DNA of 64,000 bases from Macrostomum lignano. Taxonomy: Eukaryota. The position numbers and the translations under genes are program-made. This document shows, one piece after another, positions 9,774 through 45,058 of this stretch. Each line of letters opens with the position of its first letter. The first letter of the stretch is position 1. The notes beneath the pieces were generated by a model. The model saw only the letters and a list, made by a program, of their open reading frames with translations. It did no database searches and was not told the DNA's origin. Location of the stretch: assembly GCA_002269645.1 (NCBI GenBank), contig NIVC01003219.1, forward strand, positions 1-64,000, in the 5' to 3' direction.

Positions 9774-11249
9774 TTTTTCGCTGGCTACAATGAGCATAAA
9801 ACCAGGAAAAATCAATAGTTGTTGAGTTTCAAGCATCTCAACGAAGGAACGAGACTAAGATTAGTTGAAGCGAATGTCTAGAATTATACTTAAAAAATTA
9901 AAAATAATAAAATAGCGTCGATCTCAGGTGAAGACTGAAGCGGTGAAGTAGATGTGGTGTTTACAGCGAAAGAGATGGTTTGCGCGAACATAATAAGTTT
10001 GAATTATGTGACAGGAGATCAACCATAGACTGCCTTGTACAGAAATAATTATTGCATTCAGAACAAGGCTATTTTCTTTATATGCCACCTAAGAAAATTA
10101 GGTTACTCTAACAGAATGATATGAAAGAAATTATCAGCAGGCAATGTTAGCTGCCTCCAACAGTGACGCTTGAAGTGGAATTAAAAACGTGATTTACAAA
10201 CCATGAAGTTATAATCTTTCCATGTAATTTTTTCTTACTTCAAATACAGTCTCACGGAAATCCATGGTGTTTCATAGGGGAGAAGGAAAACTATATTATA
10301 AAGAAACCCTGTACTGTAAGAGACCCAAATATGCGAGCTATCGGGCTACCCTGCTACTTAACTGTAGAGATGCAAACTATGACTGTTAAAATATTTTAAA
10401 CAGTTGATTAATTATGTCGTTAAAAATCGAACAACTACCGTGCAATCCTAATATAAATTTTAGAGCTACTTTTAAACTTAAATTATTGATACAACATACA
10501 ACTATTGAGTATTGAAATTTGAGGGTAACATTTATTCTACCGTCTACAAGAAAATCACACTCATATCATAGTAATAGCTAAACTAAAAAATCTTAATTAG
10601 TCATTTTCCTAATAAAAGCCATAAATAAAAAATATGGATATGGAAGGATACGTGAAATAAAAGTATTTATGTGATTGAACTTGATATGTAGCACTAAAAC
10701 AACAATTTTTAGTCAAAGTTAAAATTTCCCTGTACGCAGAAGAAACAACAAACACATAGAATTTTCAACTGTAAGTTTTCTATAGCTATTTTTATTAATT
10801 AAAATACTTAATTATTCAAGCTACGGAATTTTACTTGAAATATACAAAACATTCTAATTTGATTTGTTTAACTATTAATAACCTATAGAAGAATTAAAGT
10901 AGTAAAAGTCTGCCCAAGTGTAGTTATTTTATTCAAAGCCTGTATTTAAAGAGAAAAAATAGTAATATTTTCACTTTAGAGGACTGTCTGAAACTTTTTC
11001 TTTTTAAACAAAGTCCCTACAACTCTTCTGTGTAAAAAACATATTTCCGAGTTTTATAAATAACGTACCTAATGTCTTAACTTAACGACCTACGGAATTT
11101 GGTTAACGCTGAATCACTACACTATTATTTTTTGTGTCGCAAAGCTAGCACGTTACTTTCTTATTACGAAGGTGTAACTCTTTACTCTTAAATAATCTGC
11201 TCATTATTATTTTATTGACAAATACTTAAAAAGGCATTTCAGCACCAAA

Positions 11250-14200
11250 ATGAATGTTGGACCACAAGCTAGGCCTATGAATCTTGCTTTTGATGAGTAT
11301 GGACGTCCGTTCATTATTGTGAAAGATCAGGAAAGGCAAAAACGTCTTACTGGCATTGATGCTCATAAGGTATGTTAGCTTGTTAATCCTAACCTATTTA
11401 TTAAAACTAGTTTATATTTAAAGTAAACTTATATACTATTGGAAAATGTTTACCAAAAAACATAAGATAGACACAGACAGAGTATGCCCACATTTTTATA
11501 AAAAAAGAAATTATGTACTAAGCCAAGGACTTCAATATATGATTTGATTATGCAATAATATTAGGGTCCCTTTTAAGTGCAAAATATTAAATAAAAAAAC
11601 TTTTTTCTAATTTTTTGAAATACAATATTATAATAGCAATGTATATAATATACTTATAATTATAGTTGCAGGTTATTTAGTCTATTGTCAGTTATTTGTT
11701 GGAGGTCTATGCTAAGGTGGACAGTTTGTCTGCTCTTGTATAAAATGAAAACAATTTTATACAAGAGCAAACAATAAAGTAATAAAGTAATAAAAAAATA
11801 GTAATAATATTATGCCCACCAATTTTTACAAAATTAGTAAAAGCAAAAAAGTATATATTGGTGCAAAAGCAATATTTGCTAGAAATAAGAATCTATTTTT
11901 TTATCATTTAGTGCTACTTTTATTAAGATAAAAGTATTAAGTTTGAATGCTTGTTTTAGTAGAAAGGTTTGGGCAAAAGTTATGTTGCCAAAAAGTATAT
12001 TACATAAAAGTTGCAAAATTTTGTAAATTGAAATGCATTTTGTACAAGTAAAAGTGGAGTCTAATCTAAAAGTCTAAAGTTCACAAAGTCTATGAATCAA
12101 ATAAATTCATCTAAGAAGCCTCATTTAAAAGCTCTTGTGATAAAGCTACTATAACATTACAATAGAGCTATTGCAGTTAGCTTGCCCATTGTATATAACT
12201 GCCAAGCTTCCTGCAATGCAGCTGAATAGTGCTGGATAAAGACTATCATTGGCTAGCAGTGGTGCTATATGCTATGATTACAAGTCAAACAGCTGCATCT
12301 GTGCTATTAGCATATCTAGTAGCAAGAAAAGGTTGGTATTACTTGTTTATCATTTTCCCAACTTTGCATGTTAGGATTTAGCAACATTGCTAGTCCAGTT
12401 ATATTGCATAAATATGGATAGGTTGTTAGTGCTCAAGATTGCACTAGACAGTCATTTAGCCTCTAAATGATCAAGCAATGTATGAAGGATTAGCAAGAAT
12501 ACTTGAATGTACAGTTCTACAAAGGTAGCTTCCATTTTAGCTGCAGGCAGATAAGGTAAAGCCATTAGCTTCTAGCAGAAAATATAGGTTGTCTAGTTAG
12601 TTGCATATGCAAGGATAAGTCCTAGATTTCCGATGCAGTAATAGACAGCTTAAGAGTAATAGAAGATGCAGCCTTAGATGATCACTTTAAGGAGTAGTTT
12701 GCATAGTGCCATCCATAATGTTGCTTCCAAATCAACAACTGACCTAAGGGCATTATTGACTTAAGCATTAGTATTATCAGCAATGCTAGCAGCATTAGCA
12801 GCATTGACAGCCTAGCCCTAGCAATGTTAGCAACATTGGCAGTTGCAGCATTGGTAATATTGGCAGCTACAGCATTGGTAGCATTAGTAGTATCAGCAGC
12901 TGCAGCATTAGCAACATCAGCAATACTAGCAGCATTGGCTACCTTGGCAGTGCTAGCAGCATTGGTAGCACTAGTAGCATTGGCAATGTTAGCAGTATTG
13001 GTAGTTGCAGCATTAGTAGTACTAGTAGCATCAACAATATTGGCAGCATCAGCAATGCTAGCAGCATCAGCAGTGCTAGTAGTATTAGCAGCTGCAATGT
13101 TGGTAGCAGGACCTTAGCACTTGCTGCAGAACTAATCAAAACTGGTGAGTTTTGCCAAGTATGCCTATTCTTCAGTGGATACACCTGGTGTGCAATGGAC
13201 TATGCCTTTTAATTGGCAGTTCATAGCATGGGATGAATAAACATATAATTTCTATGTATAGTATTAGAAATATTATGAAATATTAAAAATATTGTAACTT
13301 TTTTTTGTTTAAATCACAGCAAGAGAACCTTTAAATCTAGAAGCAGCCAGCAAGAGAGGAGTCAACTTGTTCTTTTGTTTGCTTCTGCATTAAAAAGCTT
13401 AAGCAATACTTCTGTCTAGGTTATTAAGGAGCATTGAAAGCCCTAAGATTGGGAGAATTCACTCCAATCTCAGAGAATAAGACCTATAGATTTATAATCT
13501 AGGAAATTGCCTTAGAAGATAGAACATCTACCCAAGGGTAAGAACTCCAGTCCTAAGATCTAAGATATTTGCCTAAAGGCAGTCAACTTCCAGAGTGTAA
13601 GCTAGGACCCTCTGATCCCTATGCTACATTATTATAACTTCCTGGGAATTCTCTCAATTCTCTCAATTGCAGTGTATATGATCCCTTTTAGAAGAATAAT
13701 TAGAAGTATAGAAATAGGGTTTAATGCCAATAGACTGTTATGGCCAAGAAATAAAACATATTACCAATAGATAAGTACATATACTATAGTAGATAAGTAC
13801 ATTTGCTACCAATATAATGTACATTTATAGGCTACCAGTAATATCTGTGTACATGAAATATTAGTAAAGTATATTTAGTAATAGGAACATTAGGAAATTG
13901 TAGCAGCTTGGTGGTAGCAACAAAATTATAGTAGAGGAAACAGCCCTAGCACAACTTTGGTGATAGTTTTCAAGATTATTATAGACAGAAAACACTATTA
14001 TAACTTTTGGTAATAGCAATTAAGATTTAGAAAAAAGAAGTTAGCCCCTTTGACATGTATAACATATTTATATATATATATGTAGGATTAATCTGTTTTT
14101 TTTATAAAAAAACCTGTTTCTTTCTTTTTTAGAATGTCTATACTACAGTATGGTTTTTTGACTTGGGGTTAAGACTTTATTGAACTCTGTTAATATCAGC

Positions 14201-17200
14201 ATAAATATATCCATTCTTATCATTCCATAAGAATTCTGGCTACCTTTAGTTGCATATTATAAGCTGATTAAATGTTTTTGCGTGATCAAGGTTGGAGCAT
14301 TTTCTTATTATAAAATAAGTGACTACAATCTATTTATGACACTAGATTGATGAAAATTGCTAAAGTAAAGTTGAGAATCACCCAGGTAACAAAGCAAGTC
14401 ATATGCATATTTTGTTTTATCTTTTAACTAGATAAATTTCAATTCTATCTTTAAATTGATAGACCAAAAGTATATAATTATAACTGATAATATAAGAATT
14501 TTTATATAATGATATATAATAAAATAAATAAAATAGAAACAGTATAATAGCTATTGTATATGCATTATTAAAACGATTAAGTTTTTAATAATTAATGTAA
14601 TTAAATCTAATATCCATTTGTTCAATCCTAATAAATGTTTTACAAGTATCAGTTCTAAAAATGTTTATATAGTCAGTTTTTTGAAATCCTAACTTTTTAT
14701 AAATTAACCTTTACTAAATAAACAAAATTTTAGTCGCACATCCTGGCAGCCAAGTCTGTTGCCAATTGTCTGCGAACATCCCTAGGCCCAAAAGGCCTGG
14801 ACAAACTGATGGTCAGTCCAGATGGCGACCTTACTGTTACCAACGATGGCAGAACTATTTTAGAGAAGATGGACGTCGATCATGAGATTGCTAAGCTGAT
14901 GGTGCAGCTCAGCAAATCTCAGGATGACGAGATTGGCGATGGTACCACTGGTGAGTCGGTCTGCTTTTTAGTGGAGAAGATCTGCTTAAATATTGCTCTC
15001 AGATTAGGAGGGTGAGATTCTCATCCCAGTCTTATCTCTAAGAGGTTTAGATTCTCATTCCAGTCTCATCTCTAGAGGGTGAGATTCTTATTCCAGTCTC
15101 ATCTCTAAGAGGATTAGATTCTTATTCCAGTCTCATCTCTAAGAGGTTTAGATTCTTATTCCAGTCTCATCTCTAAGAGGTTTAGATTCTTATTCCAGTC
15201 TCATCTCTAGAGGTTTAGATTCTTATTCCAGTCTCATCTCTAAGAGGATTAGATTCTTATTCCAGTCTCATCTCTAAGAGGATTAGATTCTTATTCCAGT
15301 CTCATCTCTAAGAGGATTAGATTCTTATTCCAGTCTCATCTCTAAGAGGATTAGATTCTTATTCCAGTCTCATCTCCAGAGAGTGAGATTCTCATACCAG
15401 TCTCATCTCTAGAGGGTGAGATTCTTATTCCAGTTTTATCTCTAAAGGGTAAGATTCTCATTCCAGTCTCATTTCTAGCTTAAGGGGTGAGATTCTCATT
15501 CCAGTATTATCTCTAGAGGGTGAGATTCTGATTGTAGTCTCGGCTCTTGGTATGGTTCTCTTTTCAATCTTAACCCATTATAGGGTGAGATTCTCATCAT
15601 GGTCTGAATTGGATACTTTAATATGATTATAGTATAATAATTATAGTACAGTTAAGCAAGTCAGTGGGATGGAAGATTCTCATAAGCCTTTCAACCTGTC
15701 GCAGGCGTGGTGGTCTTGGCCGGAGCCCTGCTGGAACAAGCTGATGTACTGCTAGACAAGGGCATCCACGCTACACGAATCGCCGAAGGCTACGAGCAAG
15801 CCGCCGCCATTGCTATTCGTCATCTGGAGTCCATCGCTGACAAGTTCGAGTTTAGCCGCGATAATAAAGAGCCACTGATCGAGACCGCCATGACCACCCT
15901 GGGCTCGAAGATTATCAACCGGTTGCACCGGAAGTTCGCCGAGATCGCTGTCGACGCTGTCCTATCCGTGGCCGACTTTGAGCGCAAAGATGTCGACTTT
16001 GAATTGATCAAAGTTGAAGGCAAAGTTGGCGGCAAACTGGAAGATTCTATGCTAATCCGAGGGGTCTTGGTGGACAAAGACATGTCCCATCCGCAGATGC
16101 CCAAGCGCGTTTCCGATGCTCGCATTGCCATCCTGACCTGCCCGTTTGAGCCGCCAAAGCCCAAGACTAAGCATTCGCTTCTGGTGCAAACTGTTGAAGA
16201 CTATGAGAAATTGCGCGAGTATGAGCACAATAAATTTGAAGAGATGGTCGACCAGGTGAAGGCTACTGGCGCTAATCTGGTTATCTGTCAGTGGGGCTTC
16301 GACGATGAGGCCAACCATCTGCTGTTGCACAAGCAGCTGCCCGCCGTTCGCTGGGTTGGCGGCCCAGAGATTGAACTTATTGCTATTGCAACTGGCGGTA
16401 GGATTGTGCCCAGGTCAGTTTGGGGGAGAAGATTTGATGGTTATGGTTGATCAGCCCTCTACCTCACTTATTATTGGATTGATCCGCCCCTACCTTACTT
16501 ATTATTGGATTGATCCGCCCCCTACCTCACTTATAATTGGATTGATCCGCCCCCTACCTTACTTATTATTGGATTGATCCGCCCCCTACCTCACTTATTA
16601 TTGGATTGATCCGCCCCCTACCTTACTTATTATTGGATTGATCCGCCCTCTACCTCACTTATTATTGGATTAATCCGCCCTCTACCTCACTTATTATTGG
16701 ATTGATCCGCCCCCTACCTTACTTATTATTGGATTGATCCGCCCCCTACCTCACTTATAATTGGATTGATCCGCCCCCTACCTTACTTATTATTGGATTG
16801 ATCCGCCCCCTACCTCACTTATTATTGGATTGATCCGCCCCCTACCTTACTTATTATTGGATTGATCCGCCCTCTACCTCACTTATTATTGGATTAATCC
16901 GCCCTCTACCTCACTTATTATTGGATTGATCCGCCCCCTACCTTACTTATTATTGGATTGATCCGCCCCCTACCTCACTTATAATTGGATTGATCCGCCC
17001 CCTACCTTACTTATTATTGGATTGATCCGCCCCTACCTCACTTATTATTGGATTGATCCGCCCCTACCTTACTTATTATTGGATTGATCCGCCCTCTACC
17101 TCACTTATTATTGGATTAATCCGCCCTCTACCTCACTTATTATTGGATTGATCCGCCCTCTACCTCACTTATTATTGGATTGATCCGCCCCCTACCTTAC

Positions 17201-19514
17201 TTATTATTGGATTGATCCGCCCCCTACCTCACTTATAATTGGATTGATCCGCCCCCTACCTCACTTATTATTGGATTGATCCGCCCCCTACCTCACTTAT
17301 TATTGGATTGATCCGCCCCCTACCTCGCTAATCCAATCCGCCCTCTACTCAAACTAATGCACCCCTACTCATTGGACTCATCCGCTCCCTATTTGACAAA
17401 TCCGCCCCCCGGTCACCGCCCCCGCAGATTCGAGGAGCTGACAGCCGAGAAGCTGGGCCGGGCCGGCTTGGTCCGCGAGTTAAGCTTCGGCACCACTCGC
17501 GAGCGCATGCTGGTTATCGAAGAGTGCGCTAATAGTCGAGCTGTCACAATCTTCATTCGCGGCGGCAATAGTATGATTGTTGAGGAGGCTAAGCGCTCGG
17601 TTCACGACGCTCTGTGCGTTGTTCGCAATCTGGTGCGCGATTCTCGCATCGTGTACGGTGGCGGTGCCGCTGAGCTGGCCTGCTCACAGAAGGTGCGCTT
17701 GTTGATTGCTTTTCTTTGTTTAATATAGTCAGATCTAAATCCCAGATTTGGGATCTGAATCTCTGATTTGGGATCTGAATCCCTACTTTGGGATCTGAAT
17801 CCCTGATTTGGGATTTGAATCTCTGATTTGGGATTTGAATTTCTAAATCCCTAATTTGGGATTTGGGATCTGAATTTCTGATTTGGGATCCTAATTTCTG
17901 ATTTGGGACCCGAATCCTTGATTTTTGGGATCCGAATCTCTGATTTTTGGGATCTGAATCCCTGATTTTTTGGGATCCGAATCTCTGATTTTTGGGATCC
18001 GAATTTCTTATTTGGGACCCGAATATCTGATTTTTGGGATCCGAATCTCTGATTTTTGGGATCTGAATCCCTGATTTTTGGGATCCGAATCTCTGATTTT
18101 TGGGATCTGAATCCCTGATTTTTGGGATCCGCATCTGATTTTTGAAATCTTAATCCCTGATTTGAAATCGGATCCCTAATTTTTGATTCAGGATTTGAAT
18201 CTCTGAAAAAGAGACTGGATCTGGGATTGGGATCTAAATTTGGGACTTTAATTCACTGAATCTTGGATTTGGAACTGATGATACTGAATCATTTTTAAAG
18301 TACTGGAATTCCTATATTGTTACTCTACTTGAAGTACTATCTATATACAAACAAAAAGTTTTGCCAAATCTGCGCAGGTGATGCAAGTGGCCGACACGGA
18401 GACCCCTGGCCTGGAGCAGTACGCCATGCGGGCCTTCGCCGAAGCCTGCGAGTCCATCGTACTGGCTCTGGCTGACAATTCCGGCTTCGGGCCAATTGAA
18501 ACTCTGGGCGAATTGAAGGCTCGCCACGCTACGGAGGACAACCCTAGGCTTGGTGTGGACTGCCTGCAGCGCGGCACTTGCGATATGCGAGAGCAGAAGG
18601 TAACTGGCTGGCTGGTTAAGGCTGTTCCTTGACTCAGTTCCCTGTTCCCTGTTTTTCTTTATCTCAACTCTTTTCCTTACCCTCACCCTCTATCCACTTC
18701 TTCCCTTCTTCGTTACCCTCTCACTTAACCTCTCGCTTTCTACCTCTGCCTCACCTTCTCCCTCCCTCACTCCCACCCTCTCTCTGCCTCCCTCATTCTC
18801 CCCCTCCCTCACTCCCTCTCCCTCTCCTTCACTCTCAGTCTCACCCTCTCTCACCCTCTCCCTCTTCTCCCTCTCACTCTCACCCTCTCACTCTCACCCT
18901 CTCTCACCCTCTCCCTCTTCTTCCTCTCACTCTCATCCTCTCCCTCGTCTCCCTCTCACTCTCACCCTCTCACTCTCACCCTCTCCCTCTTCTCCCTCTC
19001 ACTCTCACCCTCACCCTCTCTCCCTCTCTCACCCTCTCCCTCTTCTTCCTCTCACTCTCATCCTCTCCCTCGTCTCCCTCTCACTCTCACCCTCTCCCTC
19101 TTCTCCCTCCCTCACCCCTCCCCTCCCTCACTTCCACCCTCTCTCTGCCTCCCTCACTCCCTCTCCCCCTCCTCACTCTCACTCTCCCTCTTCACCCTCC
19201 CTCACTGTCATCCTCTCCCTCTTCCTGACTCACTCTCTCTCACCCACCATCTCACCATCTTCGTATGCTTCATATATAAAGTTAATTAAAATACAGTGCC
19301 GCCAAAAAGTTGATTTGTTGCTGCTCTCAAACAAACAAACACAAAATTTAATCGTACAATTAAAAATAACCAACACAATCCGCAGGTAATCGAGACGCTG
19401 AGCAGCAAACGTGCTCAGATTATGCTGGCCGTACAGCTGTGCAAGATGATTCTAAAAATTGACGACATCCGTGCTATGGAGGACAAGCAAGAGTACAGCT
19501 ATCCTATGGGCTAA
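11250..19514 (+). CDS. CCT5: T-complex protein 1 subunit epsilon (CCT/TRiC chaperonin), 553 aa; join(11250..11369,14734..14950,15705..16413,17428..17692,18378..18599,19386..19514)
   Basis: CCT5-specific motifs [90 protein letters not shown] and ILKIDDIR. Exon 1 was read by hand (it is not in the ORF track). All introns are GT..AG; 1662 nt in frame. Confidence 0.97.
15010..15530. repeat. 34-bp minisatellite (GATTCTTATTCCAGTCTCATCTCTAAGAGGATTA) in CCT5 intron 2
   Basis: Period read directly; edges are degenerate. Confidence 0.93.
16450..17335. repeat. 32-bp minisatellite (TTATTATTGGATTGATCCGCCCCCTACCTCAC) in CCT5 intron 3
   Basis: About 28 copies, read directly. Confidence 0.96.
17733..18270. 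repeat. 20-23-bp minisatellite (CTCTGATTT[TT]GGGATC[T/C]GAAT) in CCT5 intron 4
   Basis: Read directly; unit length varies with the T-run. Confidence 0.9.
18655..19260. repeat. CT-rich low-complexity tract in CCT5 intron 5
   Basis: Almost purely pyrimidine (CTCTCACCCTCT-like motifs). Confidence 0.9.
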
Positions 19515-20897: not shown

Positions 20898-23800
20898 ATG
20901 ACTCTGCGACTGCAGGCCAGACTGGCTGATGCCCTGGCTTCGGGTGAATTTTATGAAGCTCAGCAGCTTTACAGGACGCTCAGTTTCAGATTGACAGCTC
21001 GCGGCCAATATGACGAAGCGGCCAGTCTGCTGTACAACGGCGCCACAGCTTTACTAAACGAAGGTCTGCATGAAAGTGGCGGCGATCTGGCCTGCCAGAT
21101 GGTGGCAGCGCAGGCCAAATCCACTGCCGAGCCGCCTAGCGTAGAGTTTGTCAGCCGGGTGTCCGCTCTGTGCAGACTGATGAAGCCGGGCTCGCCAGAG
21201 AGGGAAATGCTCACTGCTAAGTGAGTAGTATTGTTGATTTCTGATTCTGCTAAAATAGGTTCTGTCACACTTTGATCATCTCTGACCCATTATCATCATC
21301 TTATGACCCACTATGCTAGTCATCTCATGACCCATTATTATAATCTTATGACCCACTATGCTAGTCATCTCATGACCCATTATTATCATCTCATGATTCA
21401 CTATGATAGTCATCTCATGACCCACTATGATAGTCATCTCATGACCCTCTATGAGAATCATCTCATGACCCACTATGATAGTCATCTTATGACCCGCTAT
21501 GATAGCCATCTCATGAACCGCCATGATAATCATCTCATGACCTACTTTGATAGTCATCTTATGACCCTCTATGATAATCATCTCATGACCCACTATGATA
21601 GTCATCTTATGACCCGCTATGATAGTCATCTCATGAACCGCCATGATAATCATCTCATGACCTACTTTGATAATCATCTCATGAACCGCCATGATAATCA
21701 TCTCATGACCTACTTTGATAATCATCTCATGACCCACTATGATAGTCATCTCATGAACCGCCATGATAATCATCTCATGACCTACTTTGATAGTCATCTC
21801 ATGACCCACAATGATAGTCATCTCATGAACCGCCATGATAATCATCTCATGACCCACTATGGTAGTCATCTCATGACCCACTATGATAGTCATCTCATGA
21901 ACCGCCATGATAGTCATCTCATGACCCACAATGATAGTCATCTCATGAACCGCCATGATAATCATCTCATGACCTACTTTGATAATCATCTCATGAACCG
22001 CCATGATAATCATCTCATGACCTACTTTGATAATCATCTCATGAACCGCCATGATAATCATCTCATGACCTACTTTGATAATCATCTCATGACCCACTAT
22101 GATAGTCATCTCATGAACCGCCATGATAATCATCTCATGACCTACTTTGATAGTCATCTCATGACCCACAATGATAGTCATCTCATGAACCGCCATGATA
22201 ATCATCTCATGACCCACTATGGTAGTCATCTCATGACCCACTATGATAGTCATCTCATGAACCGCCATGATAGTCATCTCATGACCCACAATGATAGTCA
22301 TCTCATGAACCGCCATGATAATCATCTCATGACCCACTATGGTAGTCATCTCATGACCCACTATGATAGTCAACGAATCCCACTTGTACGAGGGGTGATC
22401 AAAAAGTTCTGCAACCTTTTGTTATAGCTTTTAGTTATAGAATCAGCAAAAGCCGAAAACTTACACATATGCGGCTATATCTGTTTGCTATATTTATATG
22501 CATTTTTGGCTTCCAAATGTGCCCCAGTAAAATTTCACAGCCATATATTTTCCATGTGTTTTCAGTAGCTGATGGAAACATCAAAAGACAGTGTTCGCTT
22601 CTATATCTTTATGTGCATGCAACTTGGTTGCAAAGTGACTGATATTCACACCATGTTTTGTGAATGTTTTAGCTGACTCTGCTCCATCATTTGACACGGT
22701 TGCCCGCTGGCTGCGCCATTTCTTGGAAGGCTGGGACAGCTTCAACGATGAACCGAGGTCTGGCCGACCCCGGACATCCGTGACCGAAGATGTCGTGGCC
22801 CATGCCGATGCAATAATTCGTGAGGATTGGAGCATTATGCTGAGATTCCTTGCCTATGAGCTTGGTGTCAGCTATGGAAGTGCTCATAACATCATGCATG
22901 AGCAACTAGGCTGCACAAAGACTTGCGCTCGGTGGGTACCCCATCTTCTCACTCCGGAGCAACAAGCAGAGAGGGGGCGCACCTGTCGCTTGTGGCTGCA
23001 AATGTTTGAGCCCCACGGCCCACGACAACTGTCGGATGTCATCATAGGAGACAAATGTTGGATCTCCTTTTACCATGAAGGATAAGCAGTCCAACATGGT
23101 CTGGCTAGCAGAAGATGAGCCAAGGCCTGAGGTGCTGAAGACCGGATTCCGCAGTCGGAAGCGGATGTTCACCATTTTTTCAACTCTCAGGGTGTTGTAT
23201 CGGTGAACATCCTTCCAGCGGGTGCCACAGTGACTGCCAGGTACTACACAGACACTGTTCTGCCAGGCGTGCTGCAGGAGCGGCAGGAACGTGCGCGAAC
23301 CAGGCATGGACCTCGACTCCTGCTGCACCATGACAATGTGGCACCGCACAGAGCGGCATCAACCATGGCGTACCTGGAGCAGCAGGGGGTCCGGCTGCTG
23401 CCCCATCCACCCTACTCTCTAGACCTAGCACCTTCCGACTTTTGGCTGTTCCCGAGGATCAAATCCGTCGTTTCTGGGAGGCCGTTTTCACGCATGCAAG
23501 ACTTTGCCCAAGCGGTACATTCAGCTCTACAGGGTATACCAACTTCGGAGTACCATGACTGCTTTCAGACATGGTGCACACGGATGCGACGGTGCATAGA
23601 TAGTGGTGGAAAGTACTTTAAGGGAATGTGACACTGATTAGACGCCTCGGCTGCTGTAGCACAGAGTTGTGAGGTCACTTGCAGAACTTTTTGATCACCC
23701 CTCGTAATTGTCAATCATTACCAAATCAACCACATTCGCATAACATTACAGTTACAAGTACATTGCATGCGACACTGTTTCCATAAGCTATAATCTGCAT

Positions 23801-24572: not shown

Positions 24573-25103
24573 GCCAGCCTCCCAGATCCTCAGTCGCTAG
24601 GCCAGCCTCCCAGATCCTCAGTTGCTGAGTCAGCCTTCCAAATGCTCAGTTGCTACCCCAGCCCTCACACTTGCTGGACCAGCCTCCCAGATCCTCGGTT
24701 GCTGGGCCAGCCTCCCAGATCCTCAGTTGCTGGGCCAGCCTCCCTGATCCTCAGTTGCTGGGCCAGCCTCCCAGATCCTCAGTTGCTGGGCCAGCCTCCC
24801 AGATCCTCAGTCGCTAGGCCAGCCTCCCAGATCCTCAGTCGCTAGGCCAGCCTCCCAGATCCTCAGTCGCTAGGCCAGCCTCCCAGATCCTCAGTTGCTG
24901 GGCCAGCCTCCCAGATCCTCAGTCGCTAGGCCAGCCTCCCAGATCCTCAGTCGCTAGGCCAGCCTCCCAGATCCTCAGTTGCTAGGCCAGCCTCCCAGAT
25001 CCTCAGTCGCTAGGCCAGCCTCCCAGATCCTCAGTCGCTAGGCCAGCCTCCCAGATCCTCAGTCGCTAGGCCAGCCTCCCAGATCCTCGGTTGCTGGACC
25101 AGC
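24573..25103 (+). repeat. 28-bp minisatellite (GGCCAGCCTCCCAGATCCTCAGT[T/C]GCT[G/A]) just downstream of the GET4 stop
   Basis: About 19 copies. Same family as 35271-36703, in opposite orientation. Confidence 0.95.
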
Positions 25104-25719
25104 CACAGAACTTACTTATGATGGTTTACTTTTAGTTTTCACGACGATAGAATTTAAGACAAATCGGTTTTCTTTAGTTACTGAAAACAGTAGCAATTAT
25201 CATCGAAATTGATACCCAATTCGGAATATTAATATAAAGCGATTTTATCTATAAACTCATCTTAATCAGCATCAGTAATCATTTTTGTAATAACTATTTC
25301 ATCTAAGCCTTAGCTGAACTTGTTAGTTTCGTAAATAGATTTATTTGTGTATGTTAAGTCTCTTCGACCAGTTTAGGTCTGCCCTGTATTAATGTCAGCG
25401 CGTCGAGAGAAGCACGAGAAAAATTGCGTTTTCTTTTCATTTTAAATGCAGAAATTGTCGACTTGGACAGTTCTGCAATCGCTTTTTTTGCGTTGAGCAG
25501 CGACTTTTAAATAAACTGTTCAGTTATTCCGGTTTTGGAGTTTCCTTCATGATGCGTGTTCCTCTATCAAAAATTGTGCCCAAGCTGTCATTATTTAATG
25601 ATTTGATCTCCAGCTAAGCTTTGTTTATAATCAGAGTGTAGCTATTCAATGTTCCGAGCTTCGAGTTATTCAAAAACTGCAACTACACCAAACTTTCTGA
25701 AAAATAAACTAAAAATTGA

Positions 25720-26492: not shown

Positions 26493-28305
26493 AAATTCTA
26501 TAAAGTGCTCCGAAGCTCGAATATAAAGGACACTGGAATTTTCTTATACTCGTAAAATGCCCTAGATGAACTTCTGTGAAAGTAAATGTTCCCTATGAAA
26601 CGTTCCGAGAGTTACTTATATGACAGAGTCGTTAATAATTATTCATTAACCAAGTCAAATTGAATCAACAAAAGCTAGTATTTATGCTATTATAAATTTA
26701 GTTTATCGTGTATTTGAGTCTTAAGAACAAACAGAGTGAGTATGCACAGTAATTTGATAGTTAGTGTCACAATAAAATTTCTCGATTTCACTGTATGATT
26801 ATATATTGTACTTCTTTGACTGTTAGAGAAGCAATATGATTAAGCCAGCACAGTATTTTAGTAGCAATTATAATAAAAAATAAAAAATCAGATGTTTAAA
26901 ATGAAAAATGTACCCAAAAATAATTACAGCAGCTTTTCTAAGAAATAACTTACTTCTCATGGAACGGCGAGACTTAAAAATATTCAAATTGCACAAAAGC
27001 TTGAAAAGATAAATTATTTGTCATAAAATATTGTATGCTTTGATTAATTATGTAAAATATGTTTTATATTTTTATTACTCTAAAATGTGTAGATGTCAAT
27101 TATTTAACTGTATTTATATACGATACTTAATATGTAATCACAGAGTTAAGGACGCCACTAACAGTTATAAGAATGGATGACAAAGTGACAAATAGTTTAA
27201 TAGCAGCTTATAAGTCAATGGAAGATGCAATTATGATTTCTGATGTCTAAAAGTAAAAATAGTATTTTTGTCTATGGCCAAAAACATGAACAACAACATG
27301 GCTATGTCCTCAATATTTCTTTTAAAATCCTGTTTGTACTGGTAAGTGAAGAAGCCAAAGCAGTTGAAGAGTCAAAAGTACTAATTATACAATAACGATT
27401 GCGTAATGCGCTCTGCATATAGAAAAATTACAAACAGCTGTTATCAACTGGCCAGTGACTTTTTTAAAGGATATTTTTACCAAGTAACTTGTATTCCGTG
27501 GGATCAGAGAATTGCACAAAAATATGAGTACAAAATTGGCTAATTTTTCCGAGAAGAATACATATATCTGATGCAGCTTTGTATCGACGCTAATAGCCTG
27601 ATTAGCTTAGCCAAAAGACAATGCGTCTTTAGCTGTCAGACCTTCAATCTGCATATCTAATTCCAACTAAACTATCCATTTCGGAAAAAATGAAGCAAAA
27701 ATACAGATTGCACGCATGATGGACTAGGGGCCACAACATTCAAGTAGCAAATACAATTTTTAGCTACAGTACTATTCAGAATTGATCAATTTAGTTGCTA
27801 TAAACTACTCAAAAACAGCAAGCATGGTAAATAGTGTGCATATAAAGTACAATTGCAAAATAGTATAGGCATGCTTAATTATTTATATTGCACTGAGATA
27901 GCAGTCAACATATAGCTATGTAGCTACGCTACCTGTAATACATTTCTACTATTGCTTGAAACCTTAATCTTGAGTGCTAATATTTTATATACATATTCTA
28001 ATTGCAAGTTCATAACAATTTGGTTTAATACATCTGTATTTACTACTGTATATTAAGCTTATGTACCCTGAAGATCACTGAACCTCTCAGAACGGACCAA
28101 CCTCAAGCACACAGTTCTGTGAACTGTCATCTTCTAAGTCCAAGAATAACAAACATAACTTTGGAAAAACCTTGAATCGAAATTCCTACATCTAAACTTC
28201 TAAAAGAAGACTTCTCTTTATTTAAATTTTCGCACGTACCTGAGGCTTTCCGTTCGAGTGGAATAATAGAAGCTGGGTCCGCACTGTTACAGCCACATAA
28301 CTGCA

Positions 28306-31300
28306 TTATGCTATCAAACACTTTGAACGTTTCCGATGCCTCAACTTTCTCACCGGCTTGAGCACACAGATTCGTCGCCTAGTGCACACCAGGATTTTGT
28401 CCTCGCCCAGCGGCGCTATCCCAGTGATCTCGTCCAGCTCTTGCAGAAACTGCAGCCGCTGGACGAAAATGAACTCGCTCCTTCTGATCACCCAGAACAG
28501 CCTCTGGCGCTGGTTATCCGTGAAGATAATTCTCTTGTCGCTTGTAGTGATGATATGCGCCGGTACTGAATCAAAGATCTGAGTTGTTGTCAGCTTTCTG
28601 TACACTCCGGTTCTGTCATTCACAATCAGGATGTGACCTTCTGCTGGGCAGGAGACCCACAGCATCTTGCGCTCGCGTGTCCAGGTGACGTACTGCGGAT
28701 GCAGATTCTCGAAGGTGAACCAGTGCCCCGTGCGGCCCAGGCAGGGGGTGAAGAACTCCACTTTCTGATCCGACGGCTGCGCCACCACCATGTCGCCGCG
28801 TCGACTGTCGACGAAGAAACCGGCAAACAGCGGCTCGTCTCTGCTGCCACCGGGCCGTTCGATCCGTTTGACCACCTGACCGTCCAGCTGCAGACAGGCG
28901 ACCACGGATAACCAGCCAGTTGGGGCTCCCGTAGAGTCTGCAGCTTGCTGCTGCTGCTGCTGCTGAGCCACTCCGCTGACATAAACCAGACCGTTCACCA
29001 GCCGCATGTGATGGCACTGCAGCCTGCCTCCCGGGTTCGAATCTCCAATCAGCACCGGCAGGTCTTTGATTTGGCCTTCCTGGCTAGAATAGACTAGCAG
29101 CGATCTTGAGCAGCTGTTCAGCAGCACCAGCTCCGCCTGGTCAGTTGAGCCATCCGCGTCAGCCAGCAGTCCGGCCGCACCGATCTCCAGTTCGCCGCGA
29201 GTCGATTGGAGCAGCTCGGCGCAGGTTCCCATATCGATCTCCTTCATCTTGTAGCTGCTATTTCGCTTCATATTGTGCCTGATGAAGCTCAGATCCAGGG
29301 CGTCCTCAGCATCCGAGCTGTCGCTGCCACCGCCGCCACCGCCGCCGCCGCTGCCGCTTCGAATTTCGTCAAGATCGACATCGTTGAGGTGGTCGTTGAC
29401 GGTCGGGTAGCGAGCTGCGGCAGCGGACGCGGCGCCGAACTGATGATGATGCTGGTGCGCTCCAGCTGTCGCCGCCTCCATTGCGTCCTGCAGTTTCTGC
29501 GAGCGACTCTCTGCGTCGTCCAGCCGAGTGATCAACTTGTTGAGATTCTCGCGCACCGCCAGCAGCTCGGCCTTGTCGAATTCGCTCATCAGCGACATGC
29601 CGGCGCCGCCGCCCAGACCGCCGGCTCCGACCTCCTCAGAGCGTCGGACAAAATCCTCGGCCAGATGGGCCAGGATCTCCTGCTTGCGCTCAAGGCTGCG
29701 CTTCCGGCTGCCGCCGCTGCCGCCGCTGAAGACGCCGCTGCTTCGACCTCTCGGACTGCCGATGCTCGAGGCGACTGCGGCAGCGGCATCGGCTGCGGCG
29801 GCAACTGCCGCAGCAGCTCCACCCTCGGTTGAGGCCTCTCCGCCGCTGCCGCTGCCACGGCTGCCGCCGCCGCCAGGTAACTGCAGCCTGCGACACTGCC
29901 TGTCTACAATGTACTTGATGATCGACTGGTGCACATGCGCCGGCGGCAGGCAGCGCAGACCCCCCGCTGGTAGTCGGGCTTCAACGCGGCATAGCGGACA
30001 GGGGAATCTGTCTCTGCTAGGCTGCTGGCTGTCCCACTTCTCCAGGCAGGTGAGGCAGAACACGTGAGAACAGTTGAGCAGTTTGGGCTCGTGCAGACGG
30101 CCCAGGTGAATCGGGCAGGTGGTCAGGTCTTCCAGGGATTCGATGCTGCCGCTGCTAGAGGACGAACTGGCGCAGCTGGGCTGCAAGTAAGACCATATAC
30201 GTAAGGGGTTACAGGGTTGATAATATTGAGTTACTATTGAGTAGCTCAGCGATAATATTGCACTAAGAAATTGGCTAACCAACTGAAACAAGCTACTTAG
30301 TTATTCCCGGTTGTAAGTAGTATCTGATATGATACGAGCCATTTAGTTAATTGTTCTTTGCGGATCTGGAACTGGGGATCTGGAACTGGGGATCTGGAAC
30401 TGGGGATCTGGAACTGGGGATCTGAAACTGGGGATCTGAAACTGGGGATCTGGAACTGGGGATCTGGAACTGGGGATCTGGAACTGGGGATCTGGAACTG
30501 GGGATCTGGAACTGGGGATCTGGAACTGGGGATCTGGAACTGGGGATCTGGAACTGGGGATCTGGAACTGGGGATCTGGAACTGGGGATCTGGAACTGGG
30601 GATCTGGAACTGGGGATCTGAAACTGGGGATCTGGAACTGGGGATCTGATCGAAACTGGGGATCTAATCGAAACTGGGGATCTGAAACTGGGGATCTGGA
30701 ACTGGGGATCTGGAACTAGGGATCTGGAACTGGGGATCTGGAACTGGGGATCTGGAACTGGATCTAACTGGATATCTGGATCTAGAAAAGAAATTACTTT
30801 TCCTATCTTGGACAGCTGTTGCTAGGAATTTAGGATTTTCGCATGCTTATGCTACTAAATCCGCTTGTAAATAGTAGTGCACGGAACAAGATTGCAAGGT
30901 AGAAATGTGTCCTGCCAGAGGAACCGCAGCACACACACACCATTAATTAGGAATGCAATGTTTTGTATGTATCAGACAGCCATATAAAGCATGAACATGC
31001 TTGTAATTTAATAGCTACATTCTGCGAGTAAATGAACCCCTTCAAACTCTTATAACGAGGCTATCGTTAGGGCTTGTTAACTAAAGCCATTAGCCGGAGC
31101 TGTTGTGTTGAATGCTTGTCTAATTGGGGAACATAAGAGAGACTATCGACACTGGGAATGTTGCATGAACTCTATTCTCAAGGCTCAACTTGGCCTTTTT
31201 CTCACAGTTTTTTTCTCTAGACTGATGGAAGAGTTACATGCAGCCTACAAAGAAACCGGTTTTTACCAGCTACCTACTACACGTACTAAACAGTTTACAT

Positions 31301-34500: not shown

Positions 34501-35270
34501 CGTGTACTCAGTTACACCTCTCACCCTCCACTTCTCCTCTCTACCCAACCCCCCCCCCCTGTATTTCAGTTTGTAGTTAAGGCGAGGGAACTGCGTGTGT
34601 TCTCTCCTCTCCTCTCCTCTCCTCTCCTCTCCTCTGTCTCCGCGCTCTGGGTTGGTGGCAATCAAGTAGTACAGCTCGTTAGGTCAAACCAATAGTTAGG
34701 ATCTGCTATACACCAGCGCGTACTATTAGGCCTTGGTAGTAGTGCTGCCTGCCTATTGGCTAATGCCGTATTGGGGGAAAGACAGACAGAAAGACGGAGT
34801 ACGCGGCAGGCTTGTGTGTTTTTCCCTTTCTCTCTCTCTCTCTCTCTATCTCTCTCCCCTCTCCACTGCCCATAGTCCAGTTGCAGGCGCAGATATACAG
34901 GCCCTATACCACACGATGCTGCTACGCATATAAACATTCAGATAGAATGATAGATGAAATGCAAACAGCACACTTCGATGGAGTCTGCCGGGTTGGACCG
35001 ATCGTGTCCTTAAAACCCCGGTGTGTTTCCGGGGGAGCAGGAATTCTGTGCTGTTTATAGGTTTCCCCAGAGAACATTTGAAAATAAAATTGCAGTGGCT
35101 ACAAGTAACAGCTGGGGCTAAATTATTTTATGTTGCAGGATCTTTTTTTACAGCTGTCTTGGTTTTGTTTACACTGCGAACAATTTATTGGTAGGGTAAT
35201 AAAAGTACATGGCAGTAAATACCTATAAACTTATGGCTTAGTAACTATAATCTGGGAGTGTAGCGGGTGG

Positions 35271-36703
35271 CCCAGCAACTGAGAATCTGGGAGACTGGCC
35301 AAGCAACTGACACTCTGGGAGGCTGACCCAGCAACTGAGGATCTGGGAGGCTGGCACAGCAACTGAGGATCTGGGAGGCTGGCACAGCAACTGAGGATCT
35401 GGGAGGCTGGCACAGCAACTGACACTCTGGGAGGCTGACCCAGCAACTGAGGATATGGGAGGCTGGCCCAGCAACTGAGGATCTGGAAGGGTGACCCAGC
35501 AACTGACACTCTGGGAGGCTGACACAACAACTGAGGATCCGGGAGGCTGACAAAGCAACTGAGGATCTGGGAGGCTGGCCCAGCAACTGAGGATCTGGAA
35601 GGGTGACCCAGCAACTGACACTCTGGGAGGCTGGCCCAGCAACTGACACTTTGGGAGGCTGGCCCAGCAAGTGAGGATCTGGGAGGCTGGCCCAGGAACT
35701 GAGGATCTGGAAAGGTGACCCAGCAACTGAGAATCTGGGAGACTGGCCCAGCAACTGAGGATCTTGAAGGGTGACCCAGCAACTGAGGATCTGGAAGGCT
35801 GACCAAGCAACTGAGGATCTAAGAGACTGGTCCAGCAACTGAGGATCTGGAAGGGTGACCCAGCAACTGACACTCTGGGAGGCTGGCCCAGCAACTGAGG
35901 ATCTGGGAGGCTGGCCCAGCAACTGAGGATCTGGAAGGGTAACCCAGCAACTGAGAATCTGGGAGACTGGCCCAGCAACTGAGGATCTGGAAGGGTGACC
36001 CAGCAACTGAGGATCTGGAAGGGTGACCCAGCAACTGAGAATCTGGGAGACTGGCCCAGCAACCGAGGATCTGGGAGACTGGCCTAGCAACTGAGGATCT
36101 GGAAGGCTGGCCCAGTAACTGGGGATCTTGGAGGCTGGTCCAGCAAGTGAGGATCTGGGAGGCTGGCCCAGTAACTGGGGATCTGGGAGGCTGGCCCAGT
36201 AACTGGGGATCTGGGAGGCTGGCCCAGCAACTGAGGATCTGGAAGGGTGACCCAGCAACTGAGGATCTGGGAGGTTTGTCCAGCAACTGAGGATCTGGGA
36301 GGCTGGCCCAGCAACTGAGGATCTGGAAGGGTGACCCAGCAACTGAGAATCTGGGAGACTGGCCCAGCAACTGAGGATCTGGGAGACTGGCCCAGCAACT
36401 GAGGATCTGGGAGACTGGTCCAGCAACTGAGGATCTGGGAGACTGGCCCCGCAACTGAGGATCTGGGAGGCTGGCCCAGTAACTGGGGATCTGGGAGGCT
36501 GGCCCAGTAACTGGGGATCTGGGAGGCTGGCCCAGCAACTGACACTCGGGAGACTGGTCCAGCAAGTGAGGATCTGGGAGGCTGGCCCAGCAACTGACAC
36601 TCTGGGAGGCTGGCCCAGCAACTGACACTCGGGAGACTGGCCCAGCAACTGAGGATCTGGGAGGCTGTCTCAGCAACTGACTCTCTGGGAGGCTGGCCCA
36701 GCA
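35271..36703 (-). repeat. 28-bp minisatellite (CCCAGCAACTGAGGATCTGGGAGGCTGG), reverse complement of the 24573-25103 array
   Basis: About 51 copies with several unit variants. Confidence 0.95.
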
Positions 36704-40454: not shown

Positions 40455-40835
40455 ATTTCATGATTCACGATTCATTCATCAAGGTCTATCTAATACTCTA
40501 ATAGTACTAATACTAGCACTAGGGCCTACTATCACTAGGCCTAAGCTTTAACCCTTGGGCCTTATTACCTGCTTTACTTACTTTTATGTATATATACATA
40601 ATTATACATATATTACCTGCTTTACTTACTTTTATGTATATATACATAAAATATAAGTAAATAAAAGTAAGTTAATTATGTATTTATTAATTATGTATAT
40701 ATACATAAAAGTAAGTAAAGCAGGTAATAAGGCCCAAGGTTTAAAGCTTAGGCCTAGTGATAGTAGGCCCTAGTGCTAGTATTAGTACTATTAGAGTATT
40801 AGATAGACCTTGATGAATGAATCGTGAATCATGAA

Positions 40836-40837
<2 letters not shown>
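40455..40837. repeat. Near-perfect inverted repeat: 150-bp arms (40455-40604, 40688-40837), 83-bp spacer, followed by (TA)n
   Basis: The arms are reverse complements with one mismatch. The spacer holds a direct copy of the inner ~39 bp of the left arm. Confidence 0.93.
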
Positions 40838-40866
<29 letters not shown>

Positions 40867-42421
40867 TGTATATATACCTTAGACATAGCTGTTAGACATA
40901 AGTCATAGGACATAGGGGCTTATTTAATCTAACTTGCCAATGAAATTTATAACTAGGGGCCTATATAATTTTGAGTTTAGGCCCCCTATTAGTTAATTAA
41001 TAGGTAGGAGGCCTAATATCTGATCTTATATCTGGCCTATATCTGGCCGATATTAGATCTAGACTAGAGCTTAAAGTTTAGGCCTTAGGCCTAGTTTTAA
41101 ATATATCTACTCTACATTGACTAGCAGACTAGCTAGGGCCTAGGCCTAAGCTAAGATTGGTTGAATATGCCCTTAAATCTAGATCTAGGCCTAGCCTAGC
41201 CAAATAATTGGGTGGCCTGCCATGTGCCACCCCAATATTTGATAGATGGAATGAATAGGCATAGGCCTATTTGGTATTTATAAGCCTATCTAGGCCTAGT
41301 ATTTAGAAAGAAGGTCATTTTTTTCTATTCGGCTCATTCTTAGATTTGTTTTCATTTTTTAAACAAATATAAGAATAAAACAAGATGGCAATTATCAAGT
41401 TCCATTTATTAAATTATTTTGATTCTAGAAAAGTACTATACAAACTATTTTAAGTAGGTCCCTATAAATAGCTATTTTCAAGAGACCTAGGCCTAAGCTT
41501 AATCAGATCAATAGACCCTAATTTTATGCTTTAAAACTTGTTATAATATATGACACCAAAAAGCTACAATGGTCTATGGCCAAAACATTAATAAGTGAAT
41601 GAGTCTTAATAGAAAACAATAAAAATATTGTGCTAGCCTGTACTTCCTATAAGTTTTTAGTATTTCTATGTGCCTAATAAACATCTACAATGATAGTGCT
41701 GTTATATTATCACAATTTATACAAGTAAATTAGCTGATTAATGTTGAATTCGCATGCAAACTAGAAATTAAACTAGCCATTTTGTTTTACTATGCAAAAT
41801 AATAACAATAAATATTTTTTGTTATAAACATAGCCATTTAGACGGTATATATATATAAGCCAATTTTTGCCCAAATAAACCCAACTTTCTAAACTTGCTA
41901 ACTTACTGCTTGCTCTTAGCTCGTTCGTTCTATATTCTCAGATAAACTTTGAAACTTTATTGAGTTAGTCATTTTAAGGAAAGAGGGAGTTACCATGCTC
42001 AGAAAATTGCTAAGAGAAGGGTTTGTAAGATATACAAAGGAAACTCAAAGAGTTGTGTTATGACCTTCTAATCCCAATGAATGCCCGAGTAGGACAATCT
42101 AATAAGTTCAAGTAGGCCCTATTAGTACTAGACCACTCAGGCCATACATAAGATGCTACCAGACTAATACATAAAATGCTACCAGACTAGTATATAAGAG
42201 GCTACCAGACTAATACATAAGACGCTACCAGTATATTCAAATGAAATTTTAAGAAACAGTTAAAGAGTGAAAATAGAAGTGCAATTAAGATAACTTTAGT
42301 AGATAGGAACAACACCTGTACAACTTTGGTGGCAGCTCGTAGGATATTTAATAAACACTAGCATCAATAGTTAGAGTTTAGAAAGACAAAGCCAAAAGCC
42401 CTGTCACAATATTATTGTTTA

Positions 42422-43230
42422 GGAAGTGCGTATCCCCACGGTCCCGTGCCAATAATTCCAATTTTATCCACATAGATCCATGTCAATAATTTTCAGCTTC
42501 TCGCTATGGCTAAAAACTAGATTGTGTAGTTGTTTATGTTTAGTTTTGTGTACTGACGTTAAATCAATGTTGTCATTATTATTTGTAATATTATCATTAA
42601 GATTATTATATTTTGAATTTTGAATTTTGCAAGTCTCACATTCGCCTTGATCTTTGGGTTGTTTGGTTATTCTAAGCAGAAGCCAACAGCTAAGCAAATA
42701 TTTAAAATTAACCCTTTTAATGACAAAAAGTTTTAACAAAGTTTAACAAATACTCAGTATTATTCAGTATTCAGTACATGTAGTTTATTTGGAAGATTTG
42801 TAAAACAAGAAGGTTTTTGAATAGATTCATTTTAAGGTTCTTTATTCCAATAAGCTGCTATGAGGATAAGCTGGAAATTCTCAACATGGATCCCTGTGGA
42901 TAAAATTGGAATTATTGACACGGCCTATAGACTTAAATGGTGGCAGCTATTTCAATAAGCTGCTATGGGGATAAGCTGGAAATTATTGACACAGATCTAT
43001 ATGGATAAAATTGGAATTATTGGCATAGGACCGTGGGGATCATGCTTGGGTGCAACCTTGGGATTCACCCGGCCGTTTCTATTGGCAACACATGCATGTA
43101 AGTCGCTTTTGGCTGAGAGCAGTCACGTGACTACTGTTCTGTCCAATAGCGACTTACATGCGTGTGTTGCCAATAGAAATGGCCAAGTGAATCCCAAAGT
43201 TGCGCATGTATGGTGGGGATAAGCACTTCC
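42422..43230. mobile_element. Mutator-like (MULE) non-autonomous element, ~78-bp TIRs starting GGAAGTGC, 9-bp TSD TATTGTTTA
   Basis: TSD at 42413-42421 and 43231-43239. The TIRs align once the nested MITE is removed, and the right TIR is partly duplicated (42860-43040). A 9-bp TSD with long G-starting TIRs is typical of MULEs. Confidence 0.82.
43041..43212. mobile_element. Hairpin MITE (172 bp) nested in the MULE right TIR, 8-bp TSD GTGGGGAT
   Basis: TSD at 43033-43040 and 43213-43220. The right end is GTTGCGCATGTATG, the left end is degenerate, and the interior is palindromic around GTCACGTGAC. Confidence 0.85.
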
Positions 43231-43801
43231 TATTGTTTATGGTCAAATTGCCATATTAGAAAAACTATATTAGAATAACACATTTTAATATAGCTTTTTG
43301 CAGTCCATTTGGGCTTACACACCTTGAATTTAATCTAAGATAAGTTTGCCAATGTAATCAAGTTTTTGTCTATAGTAGCAAGGCTAAATATAGCTACATT
43401 TAATTTGGTCTAAAAAGCATCAATTTGGTCCATAGCTGCAATTACAACTGCTGCAAAGGACTAGAAGAGCAAGATTAGCCTTAGAATTGTAGACCCTTTG
43501 CTAGGCTTCTAGAAGAGTGCCATTGGCTTGTGATCAAAGCATGTGAATACCTGAAAGATAAGGAAACCACTGCCAGCATAGATTGCCTGCAAAAGGATAA
43601 CAATTACCAAGGCAAGTTGCTAGAGGCTTAGGTCCAACTGCTACTAGATGTAATTGAGACAAACTCTTTGTTGACATTGCAGAAAATGCAATACTTAGTT
43701 GAAGGAATGGTTCCATTTGGTTATCAGATTTTGTCTATTAGGAGAGCTCTAAAAAGCAACTAAAATTGTTAGTAGAGATGCTACTATTCCAGTAGTATGC
43801 A

Positions 43802-44099
43802 CATACATGCGCAACCTCTGAAATTCGGTCGGCCATGCGACTTAGTTTTAACAAAAATGCGACGTAGTTTTTGGCCAAAAATGCGACTTACATGTAAAAA
43901 AACCCAAAAGCAAAATTAACGCAACTTTGGGTAAACGGCAGGAGTAACTATGACTGTCTTATTAAGCCAAAATGCCTCGTCAGCTACTTAGTACTACTAC
44001 TTGATTATTTTTTCGGGTGGGCATTTTTGCGACTTTCTTGGTTGGCCGCCAAATCGGTCGGCCGGATCGGCCGACTCGGCCGACTGTTGCGCATGTATG
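43802..44099. mobile_element. MITE (298 bp), 14-bp TIR CATACATGCGCAAC, 8-bp TSD AGTATGCA (hAT- or P-superfamily-like)
   Basis: Perfect TIRs; TSD at 43794-43801 and 44100-44107. Shares its TIR and the internal GCGACTTACATG with the 43041-43212 element. Confidence 0.9.
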
Positions 44100-44921: not shown

Positions 44922-45058
44922 CTTACTTACTTACTTAGCTGCAGGGCTGTCCTGGAGGGGACACAGCGGGAAGCCGCGGGTGCCCATTTCGCTAATCCCT
45001 GAATGGCCGATGCGTCGCTATGGACAGAGGGTTGGCGCCGCCCAGGGAGGTCCCCAGT
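44922..45058 (-). mobile_element. Short (137 bp) 5'-truncated non-LTR retroposon insertion with (TAAG)n tail and 14-bp TSD
   Basis: GCCATTCAATGTTA at 44908-44921 and 45059-45072 flanks a GC-rich insert ending in CTAAGTAAGTAAGTAAG on the minus strand. Family not assigned. Confidence 0.8.

Follow-up and report, generated by a model that had tools for sequence, protein, structure and literature searches.

Why should the first intron of a gene be almost free of CpG when much of the DNA around it is not? The question arises at CCT5 of the flatworm Macrostomum lignano, in a 64,000-nt stretch of DNA (GenBank assembly GCA_002269645.1, contig NIVC01003219.1, positions 1 to 64,000 of the forward strand) that was analysed as a whole and is referred to here as the window. 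Intron 1 of CCT5 (11370-14733, plus strand) is 3364 nt long with a GC content of 0.310, and its only CG dinucleotides are the three at 12631, 14281 and 14574. An earlier reading made from the letters alone (the sequence-only reading) had claimed these same three positions, correctly to the nucleotide, and had attributed the void to a locally confined mutator, either methylation-driven or resembling fungal repeat-induced point mutation (RIP). The explanation that we favour, and to which we give an even chance of being right, is that the void may be the footprint of patchy germline deamination of 5-methylcytosine (5mC) that spares exons.

Intron 1 of CCT5 Is a CpG-Specific Void

From base composition, 80.2 CG would be expected in intron 1, giving an observed-to-expected ratio (o/e) for CpG of 0.037. 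GpC has an o/e of 2.07 and is therefore not deficient, so that the deficit is specific for CpG, and it affects all four NCG/CGN trinucleotide classes alike (o/e 0.04). The probability of finding three or fewer CG is 1e-30 at an o/e of 1, 2.5e-17 at the window-typical value of 0.6 and 0.04 at 0.1, and the lowest count in 5000 mononucleotide shuffles of the intron was 53. Likelihood-ratio segmentation placed the core of the void at 11344-14280 (1 CG vs 77.5 expected, log-likelihood ratio 54.5), which makes it the largest and strongest non-tandem void of the window. The core starts no more than 27 nt from the last CpG of exon 1.

We then compared the intron with controls, all of which come from the single 64-kb window and may include functional DNA. 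Six non-tandem stretches of equal AT-richness gave CpG o/e values of 0.67-1.22. A GC-content artefact is thereby ruled out, and non-tandem DNA of equal GC content differs from the intron as the sequence-only reading had supposed. That reading had counted about 20 CG in the stretch 26500-28100; the actual count is 24 (o/e 0.63). The promoter region (9900-11240) is AT-rich and CpG-normal, with an o/e of 0.85.

The assignment of 11370-14733 to intron 1 was borne out by its GT-AG ends, by the protein obtained on splicing and by cDNA of a related species. The splice signals, gt at 11370 and ag at 14732-14733, join the 120-nt exon 1 (11250-11369, plus strand, ATG at 11250), delimited by the gene model and tblastn with CCT5 homologues, to exon 2 (14734-14950, plus strand). 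Exon 1 has three CG, the last at 11343, and exon 2 has eight. The coding sequence (CDS) comprises six exons (11250-11369, 14734-14950, 15705-16413, 17428-17692, 18378-18599 and 19386-19514), which splice into an uninterrupted frame for a 553-aa protein identical to the M. lignano CCT5 of UniRef at 514 of 515 aligned residues. cDNA from a related Macrostomum, at 97% amino-acid identity, bridges the junction between exons 1 and 2; these contigs are intronless transcripts. Two internal segments of the spliced model, 24 and 14 residues long, are absent from the UniRef entry (515 aa) and are probably gaps in the UniRef gene model. The GC content at third codon positions of the CDS is 0.62 vs a GC content of 0.31 in intron 1.

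The Void Crosses Several Kinds of Sequence and Is Independent of Tandem Repeats

Tandem arrays occupy 42% of the window. Six other gaps without CG, 0.6-1.1 kb long, are arrays whose unit has none. The void of intron 1 is independent of such repeats: the tandem-repeat fraction of its core is 0.09, and 7-mer redundancy relative to dinucleotide shuffles does not exceed a z of 2.6 outside 12745-13110 (0.6, 0.8, 2.6 and -0.5), which rules out a tandem-repeat artefact as its cause. About 90% of the intron matches its own dinucleotide shuffles in complexity. At a score of 30, Tandem Repeats Finder detected a degenerate AGC-type repeat at about 12.75-13.1 kb and tiny AT repeats, and nothing more.

The intron begins with a unique, complex, AT-rich sub-block (11370-12744) that has a GpC o/e of about 2.3-2.5, one CG and a 7-mer z of 0.6-0.8. 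It is followed by the decayed AGC-type triplet/9-mer repeat (12745-13110; 366 nt), which has no CG, is open in four reading frames and has a z of 13.7. In the unique sub-block beyond it (13111-14280; z 2.6), GpC becomes ordinary after about 13500 and CG is still zero. The 3' end of the intron (14281-14733; 453 nt) is of ordinary composition, with two CG vs 5.0 expected, GpC 1.2 and TpA 0.99. Because the void extends over three or more sub-blocks that differ in composition, a regional process accounts for it better than several independent CG-free insertions would.

Sister Voids Lie in Transposon-Rich DNA Upstream of mTOR

The same segmentation found four further non-tandem voids at 40.5-47.3 kb, upstream of mTOR, in a domain densely populated by foldback and inverted-repeat elements. 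A foldback element marks the start of the first (40469-41750; 3 CG), in which TAGGCCTA and CTAG are abundant. The second (43204-43809) and the third (44277-44966) have no CG, and the second lies inside or beside an element with terminal inverted repeats. The fourth (45040-47311; 7 CG, o/e 0.098) ends at the first recognisable mTOR coding exon. The sister voids carry the signature of intron 1, namely low CG, GA/TC at about 0.7, AC/GT at about 0.8 and high GC and AG/CT dinucleotides. Their TpA stands at 1.08 and their CTA/TAG at 1.59, and CTAG occurs 59 times vs 20.8 expected.

Several elements of this domain could be delimited. The foldback element at 40455-40837, exactly at the left edge of the first block, has arms of 150 nt, 99% complementary to each other, with an AT-rich centre of 83 nt between them, and looks very young. 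Among 42432-43040, 43052-43203 and 43288-44307 are two elements resembling miniature inverted-repeat transposable elements, with terminal inverted repeats of 79 nt and 98 nt (87% complementary); beside them, in the 42432-44307 region, lies a 152-nt palindrome, and one terminus is present in three copies. A 21-mer of one inverted-repeat terminus gave only chance matches to metagenome contigs, with a single match of 31 nt. Clusters of the palindromic word TAGGCCTA/GGCCTAG are dense at 40900-41300 and 46840-46940, and GGCC occurs 44 times in 40.5-47 kb vs 5.8 expected.

Patchy Germline Methylation as a Possible Cause

According to reviews, M. lignano conserves DNMT1, DNMT3 and ALKB2, and its 5mC is low-level (PMC11292947, PMC9246332, PMC10658182). 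According to a 2022 review the genomic methylation pattern is unknown in all free-living flatworms (PMC9246332), and our literature search returned no newer Macrostomum methylome. In the explanation that we favour, the retained DNMT1/DNMT3 system would make 5mC in the germ line, over the long term and in a small patch. Deamination to thymine would turn CpG into TpG or CpA, and the AT-biased background would then erode part of these products. Starting at the 5' splice site, the methylated patch would cover about 2.9 kb without reaching the coding exons, and the same state would recur in the transposon-rich DNA upstream of mTOR. The mechanism is an ordinary one; its distribution is unusual. We infer both that methylation caused the void and that it acted in place.

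Traces of such decay may be present in both domains. At one position of the intron 1 AGC repeat, preceding CTAG, the units carry TG five times, CA twice and TA twice, an alternation that hints at a lost CG. In the aligned transposon arms of the sister domain, transitions were found at 6 of 20 CpG-site positions vs 29 over 505 other positions. The arms also show TG<->CA doublets, which would be the mark of ancestral CG decayed independently in two copies, and the three-copy inverted-repeat terminus contains one polarised CG>TA change. If so interpreted, the arms offer direct evidence, from a small sample, of in-place CpG-biased decay within a void domain.

A number of observations weigh against this explanation. 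The transposon-arm statistics come from few copies that are partly related and not independent. To reach an o/e of 0.013-0.04, CpG must be at least 10- to 30-fold hypermutable, at the limit of the mammalian range or past it, and the surplus of TpG/CpA in intron 1, about 30 dinucleotides vs about 60 missing CpGs, lies within the control range. The exons show no corresponding loss. The CpG o/e of the CCT5 CDS is 0.945, as the sequence-only reading had it when it called CCT5 CpG-rich from exon 2 onward, though exon 2 by itself has 0.59. CpGs across the boundary between codon positions 3 and 1 number 72 vs 69.7 expected, and the arginine codons are 30 CGN and 6 AGR. Compared with the cDNA of the related species (85.7% nucleotide identity), third-position transitions affect 33 of 121 CpG sites (27%) and 101 of 319 other G/C sites (32%); on this comparison the synonymous CpGs of CCT5 are not hypermutable. 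With the void edge no more than 27 nt from exon 1 and a CDS without CpG loss, methylation would need an abrupt boundary at the exon. Beyond the exons, the intron 3 minisatellite of CCT5 retains 28 of 28 CpGs, and excess CpG change within the tandem arrays is weak and inconsistent (0.7- to 4.7-fold) and is confounded by higher-order structure.

Was the Core CG-Free by Origin?

Two features favour the main alternative, in which no CpG-specific process acted at the locus: the core stops about 450 nt before exon 2, where composition is ordinary, much like the edge of a block, and the flanking exons are untouched. The 2.9-kb core would have been inserted or locally generated, either as an old non-autonomous element or by growth from CG-free simple repeats, and would never have had CpG or would have lost it elsewhere. 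We regard this as unlikely. The window offers suitable material, both in the extent of its tandem arrays and in the six gaps formed by arrays without CG in their unit, and the intron itself contains the decayed AGC-type repeat at 12745-13110, with an enrichment of GCA, AGC and CAG trinucleotides that matches a (CAG)n-like source. Set against this, about 90% of intron 1 has no residual repetitiveness, and the core comprises several compositional sub-blocks. The units of the AGC repeat are mutually 60-70% alike, and from this likeness we roughly estimate that about 12 new CpGs would be due in 12.1-13.1 kb, where one is present. A CpG-free source would itself need a CpG-depleting process elsewhere in the genome.

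Direct searches for an inserted element were likewise negative. Terminal inverted repeats at the edges of the intron 1 block numbered 0 vs 4 expected by chance, and six stop-masked frames of intron 1 contained no Pfam domain. No second copy of the intron was found in the window by blastn (word size 9, E 0.01), and no long inverted or direct repeats were found within the intron. The search for non-coding RNA and tRNA found none in the intron or the window, and a distant-mode search of a phage collection gave low-complexity matches to the AGC repeat only. An origin as a nuclear mitochondrial segment or from another organelle was ruled out by strand-symmetric composition and by the absence of coding remnants.

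A RIP-like Process, a Deaminase or Selection

The sequence-only reading had stressed the abundance of TAG, CTA and CTAG words, and these are indeed conspicuous. The o/e of CTA/TAG in intron 1 is 1.55 vs 0.90 in pooled control non-coding DNA, and CTAG occurs 25 times, where base composition predicts 9.5 and a first-order Markov model 15.7. The enrichment on base composition, 2.6-fold, is matched by a 2.8-fold enrichment in the sister domain. Such words would be expected of a RIP-like process, in which a repeat- or domain-targeted cytosine mutator strikes CpG and then non-CpG cytosines, converting CG to TA and raising TpA and CTAG. The polarised CG>TA change in the inverted-repeat terminus and the two TA units at the TG/CA position of the AGC repeat are of the same kind, and both TpA/ApT (1.117) and TpA o/e (1.07) in the intron lie above most controls.

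We nevertheless give a RIP-like process very little credence. We applied the criteria TpA/ApT of at least 0.89, (CpA+TpG)/(ApC+GpT) of at most 1.03 and a composite index above 0. The first does not discriminate in this AT-rich genome, with controls at 1.02, 1.17 and 0.91 also above 0.89. The substrate index of intron 1 is 1.395, on the wrong side of its threshold, and the composite index is -0.278 in the intron and -0.14 in the sister domain, as compared with -0.16 to -0.29 in two of three control stretches. Strong TpA enrichment, as claimed from the sequence alone, was an overstatement: with controls at 0.63-1.03, TpA in the intron is simply not depleted. CA/TG is at or over expectation (o/e 1.17, or 1.11 without the repeat and 1.30 for CA alone; controls 0.91-1.28), and the window holds no duplicate of the intron; the second, non-CpG hit that the sequence-only reading invoked thus finds no support. 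Among NTAN words CTAG alone is enriched and GTAC, TTAA and TATA are not, so there was no general conversion of NCGN to NTAN. No RIP-like process in animals came up in our literature search. Of the two mutators proposed by the sequence-only reading, then, the RIP-like one falls away and the methylation-driven one is retained, on the strength of the CpG-specific deficit, its recurrence in patches, the CpG-biased transitions in transposon arms and the reported DNMT1/DNMT3. None of the readings offered here accounts for the joint rise of CTAG with the void state.

The remaining dinucleotides bear on editing by an enzyme of the AID/APOBEC type, which would have removed cytosines without a preceding G and kept GpC, for instance in a retro-copied insert. 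The ranking of TC/GA (o/e 0.69), AC/GT (0.83) and GpC (2.07) in intron 1 is the order expected of a deaminase that avoids a 5' G. Even so, CC/GG is undepleted at 1.02, and the expected products TT/AA are not raised (1.00; controls 1.02-1.23). The intron is also nearly strand-symmetric (GC skew +0.08, AT skew +0.04), and A outnumbers T, whereas C>T editing of the shown strand would leave T in excess; the depletion of CpG is about 20 times stronger than that of any other context. We find this account scarcely credible. Transcription- or R-loop-associated deamination was ruled out by the excess of A over T on the coding strand together with the CpG-specific deficit.

Selection against CpG in intron 1, perhaps as protection from a spurious CpG-island-like promoter or from CXXC-type binding near a housekeeping promoter, would suit a void that opens a first intron right at its 5' splice site, beside the CpG-normal region 9900-11240. 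Intergenic, transposon-rich DNA that has no first intron nearby shows the same state, and near-total loss of about 75 CpGs over 2.9 kb of unconstrained-looking DNA is beyond weak selection. We know of no mechanism that demands selection against CpG in an intron, and consider this explanation highly improbable.

Comparison with Known Methylation Landscapes

If patchy methylation did shape intron 1, its landscape would differ from those of the systems we compared. Mosaically methylated invertebrates (Ciona, honeybee, oyster and annelids) share with the window a local, CpG-specific deficit beside CpG-replete DNA, DNMT1 together with DNMT3, and the expected deamination of 5mC. Their footprint, however, tracks housekeeping gene bodies including exons, whereas here it lies in an intron and in intergenic transposon-rich DNA while the CCT5 CDS stands at 0.95; it is also far deeper here, at o/e 0.01-0.1 compared with the usual 0.3-0.6. 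Gene-body methylation of the classical kind is excluded for CCT5 because its exons show no CpG loss (CDS o/e 0.945) and no excess of synonymous CpG transitions. Windows of mTOR and the RING-finger gene that contain exons likewise have CpG o/e values of 0.86-1.23.

Global methylation of the vertebrate or sponge type shares very low CpG in unconstrained DNA and the retention of promoter-proximal CpGs (9900-11240). In this window, by contrast, promoter-distant exons are undepleted, CpGs persist in minisatellites, and values of 0.67-1.2 are found in several AT-rich non-coding stretches; the depletion is therefore patchy and not global. Methylation directed at transposons or heterochromatin, as in plants, fungi, vertebrates and some arthropods, shares sharp patches and CpG-biased change in the element arms of the sister domain, but intron 1 itself lacks transposon hallmarks. 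To our knowledge, no flatworm has been described that has transposon-directed methylation but lacks methylation of gene bodies. Fungal RIP shares with the intron AT-richness, a scarcity of CpG and undepleted TpA; it differs in that CpA/TpG is not consumed here, the composite index is negative, the window has no duplicate and the genome is that of an animal.

With a void state shared with transposon-rich DNA and with exons spared, the methylation landscape would therefore be patchy and non-exonic, neither of the gene-body kind nor RIP-like. It is tempting to speculate, though we remain more doubtful than convinced, that M. lignano lost gene-body methylation and kept DNMT1/DNMT3 for patchy non-exonic methylation, with the patches eroded to o/e values of 0.01-0.1. 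Low global 5mC would follow from methylated patches that are nearly CpG-free, and such a landscape would explain why 5mC is 'low' despite both enzymes. It would be new for Bilateria and legible from sequence alone. The exons of CCT5, mTOR and GET4 are predicted to be without a methylation footprint, and kilobase-sized non-coding patches to be almost CpG-free. Should the voids prove to be the methylated compartment, Macrostomum would separate methylation of the transposon/heterochromatin type from gene-body methylation within Spiralia; should they prove unmethylated, CpG-specific depletion this deep would need a new explanation.

Neighbouring Genes and Tandem Arrays of the Window

CCT5 has as neighbours a DUF5578 gene (minus strand), GET4, a RING-finger open reading frame (minus strand) and the 5' part of mTOR. 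An intron of GET4 contains a mariner/SETMAR-type transposase (22639-23628, plus strand) that is broken over two reading frames, with HTH_32 in its N-terminal part and a catalytic part like that of Mos1/SETMAR; at a CpG o/e of about 0.6 it forms no void. The RING-finger frame (28306-30291, minus strand) is open over 661 aa, with a C3HC4 RING finger, runs of Ala, Gly and Gln and a GC content of up to 0.68. No ATG lies upstream of the RING domain, and the frame is probably missing a 5' exon.

The five introns of CCT5 and the abundance of tandem repeats in the window agree with the published account of the M. lignano genome (PMC5730564). The arrays are minisatellites with units of 11-57 nt, and introns 2-5 of CCT5 and the introns of mTOR are each largely one array. 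The window opens with a C-rich 35-mer array (1-2173; GC 0.64, GC skew -0.64) that continues beyond its start; in the CGCG core of this array, transitions are about 5-fold more frequent than at other G/C sites. Two arrays of one 28-mer family (26 of 28 positions identical after rotation) flank the RING-finger gene in opposite orientation, at 24573-25104 and 35268-36703. In the first array the CpG site of this unit is CG 9 times and TG 7 times; in the second, TG accounts for 39 copies and TA for 5, and CG is absent.

Arrays of the 22-mer TTACAGACACTTACAGATGGTA, both without CG, occupy parts of two mTOR introns (48164-48586 and 50555-51261). A telomere-like interstitial sequence lies in an mTOR intron at 51719-52772; it is a 12-mer array of AATCCCTAATCC in which CCCTAA hexamers occur 46 times, on the same strand throughout. 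Also in an mTOR intron, at 53274-59715, about 200 copies of a 31-mer form an array of 6.4 kb with a higher-order period of 223 nt and a GC skew of +0.4.

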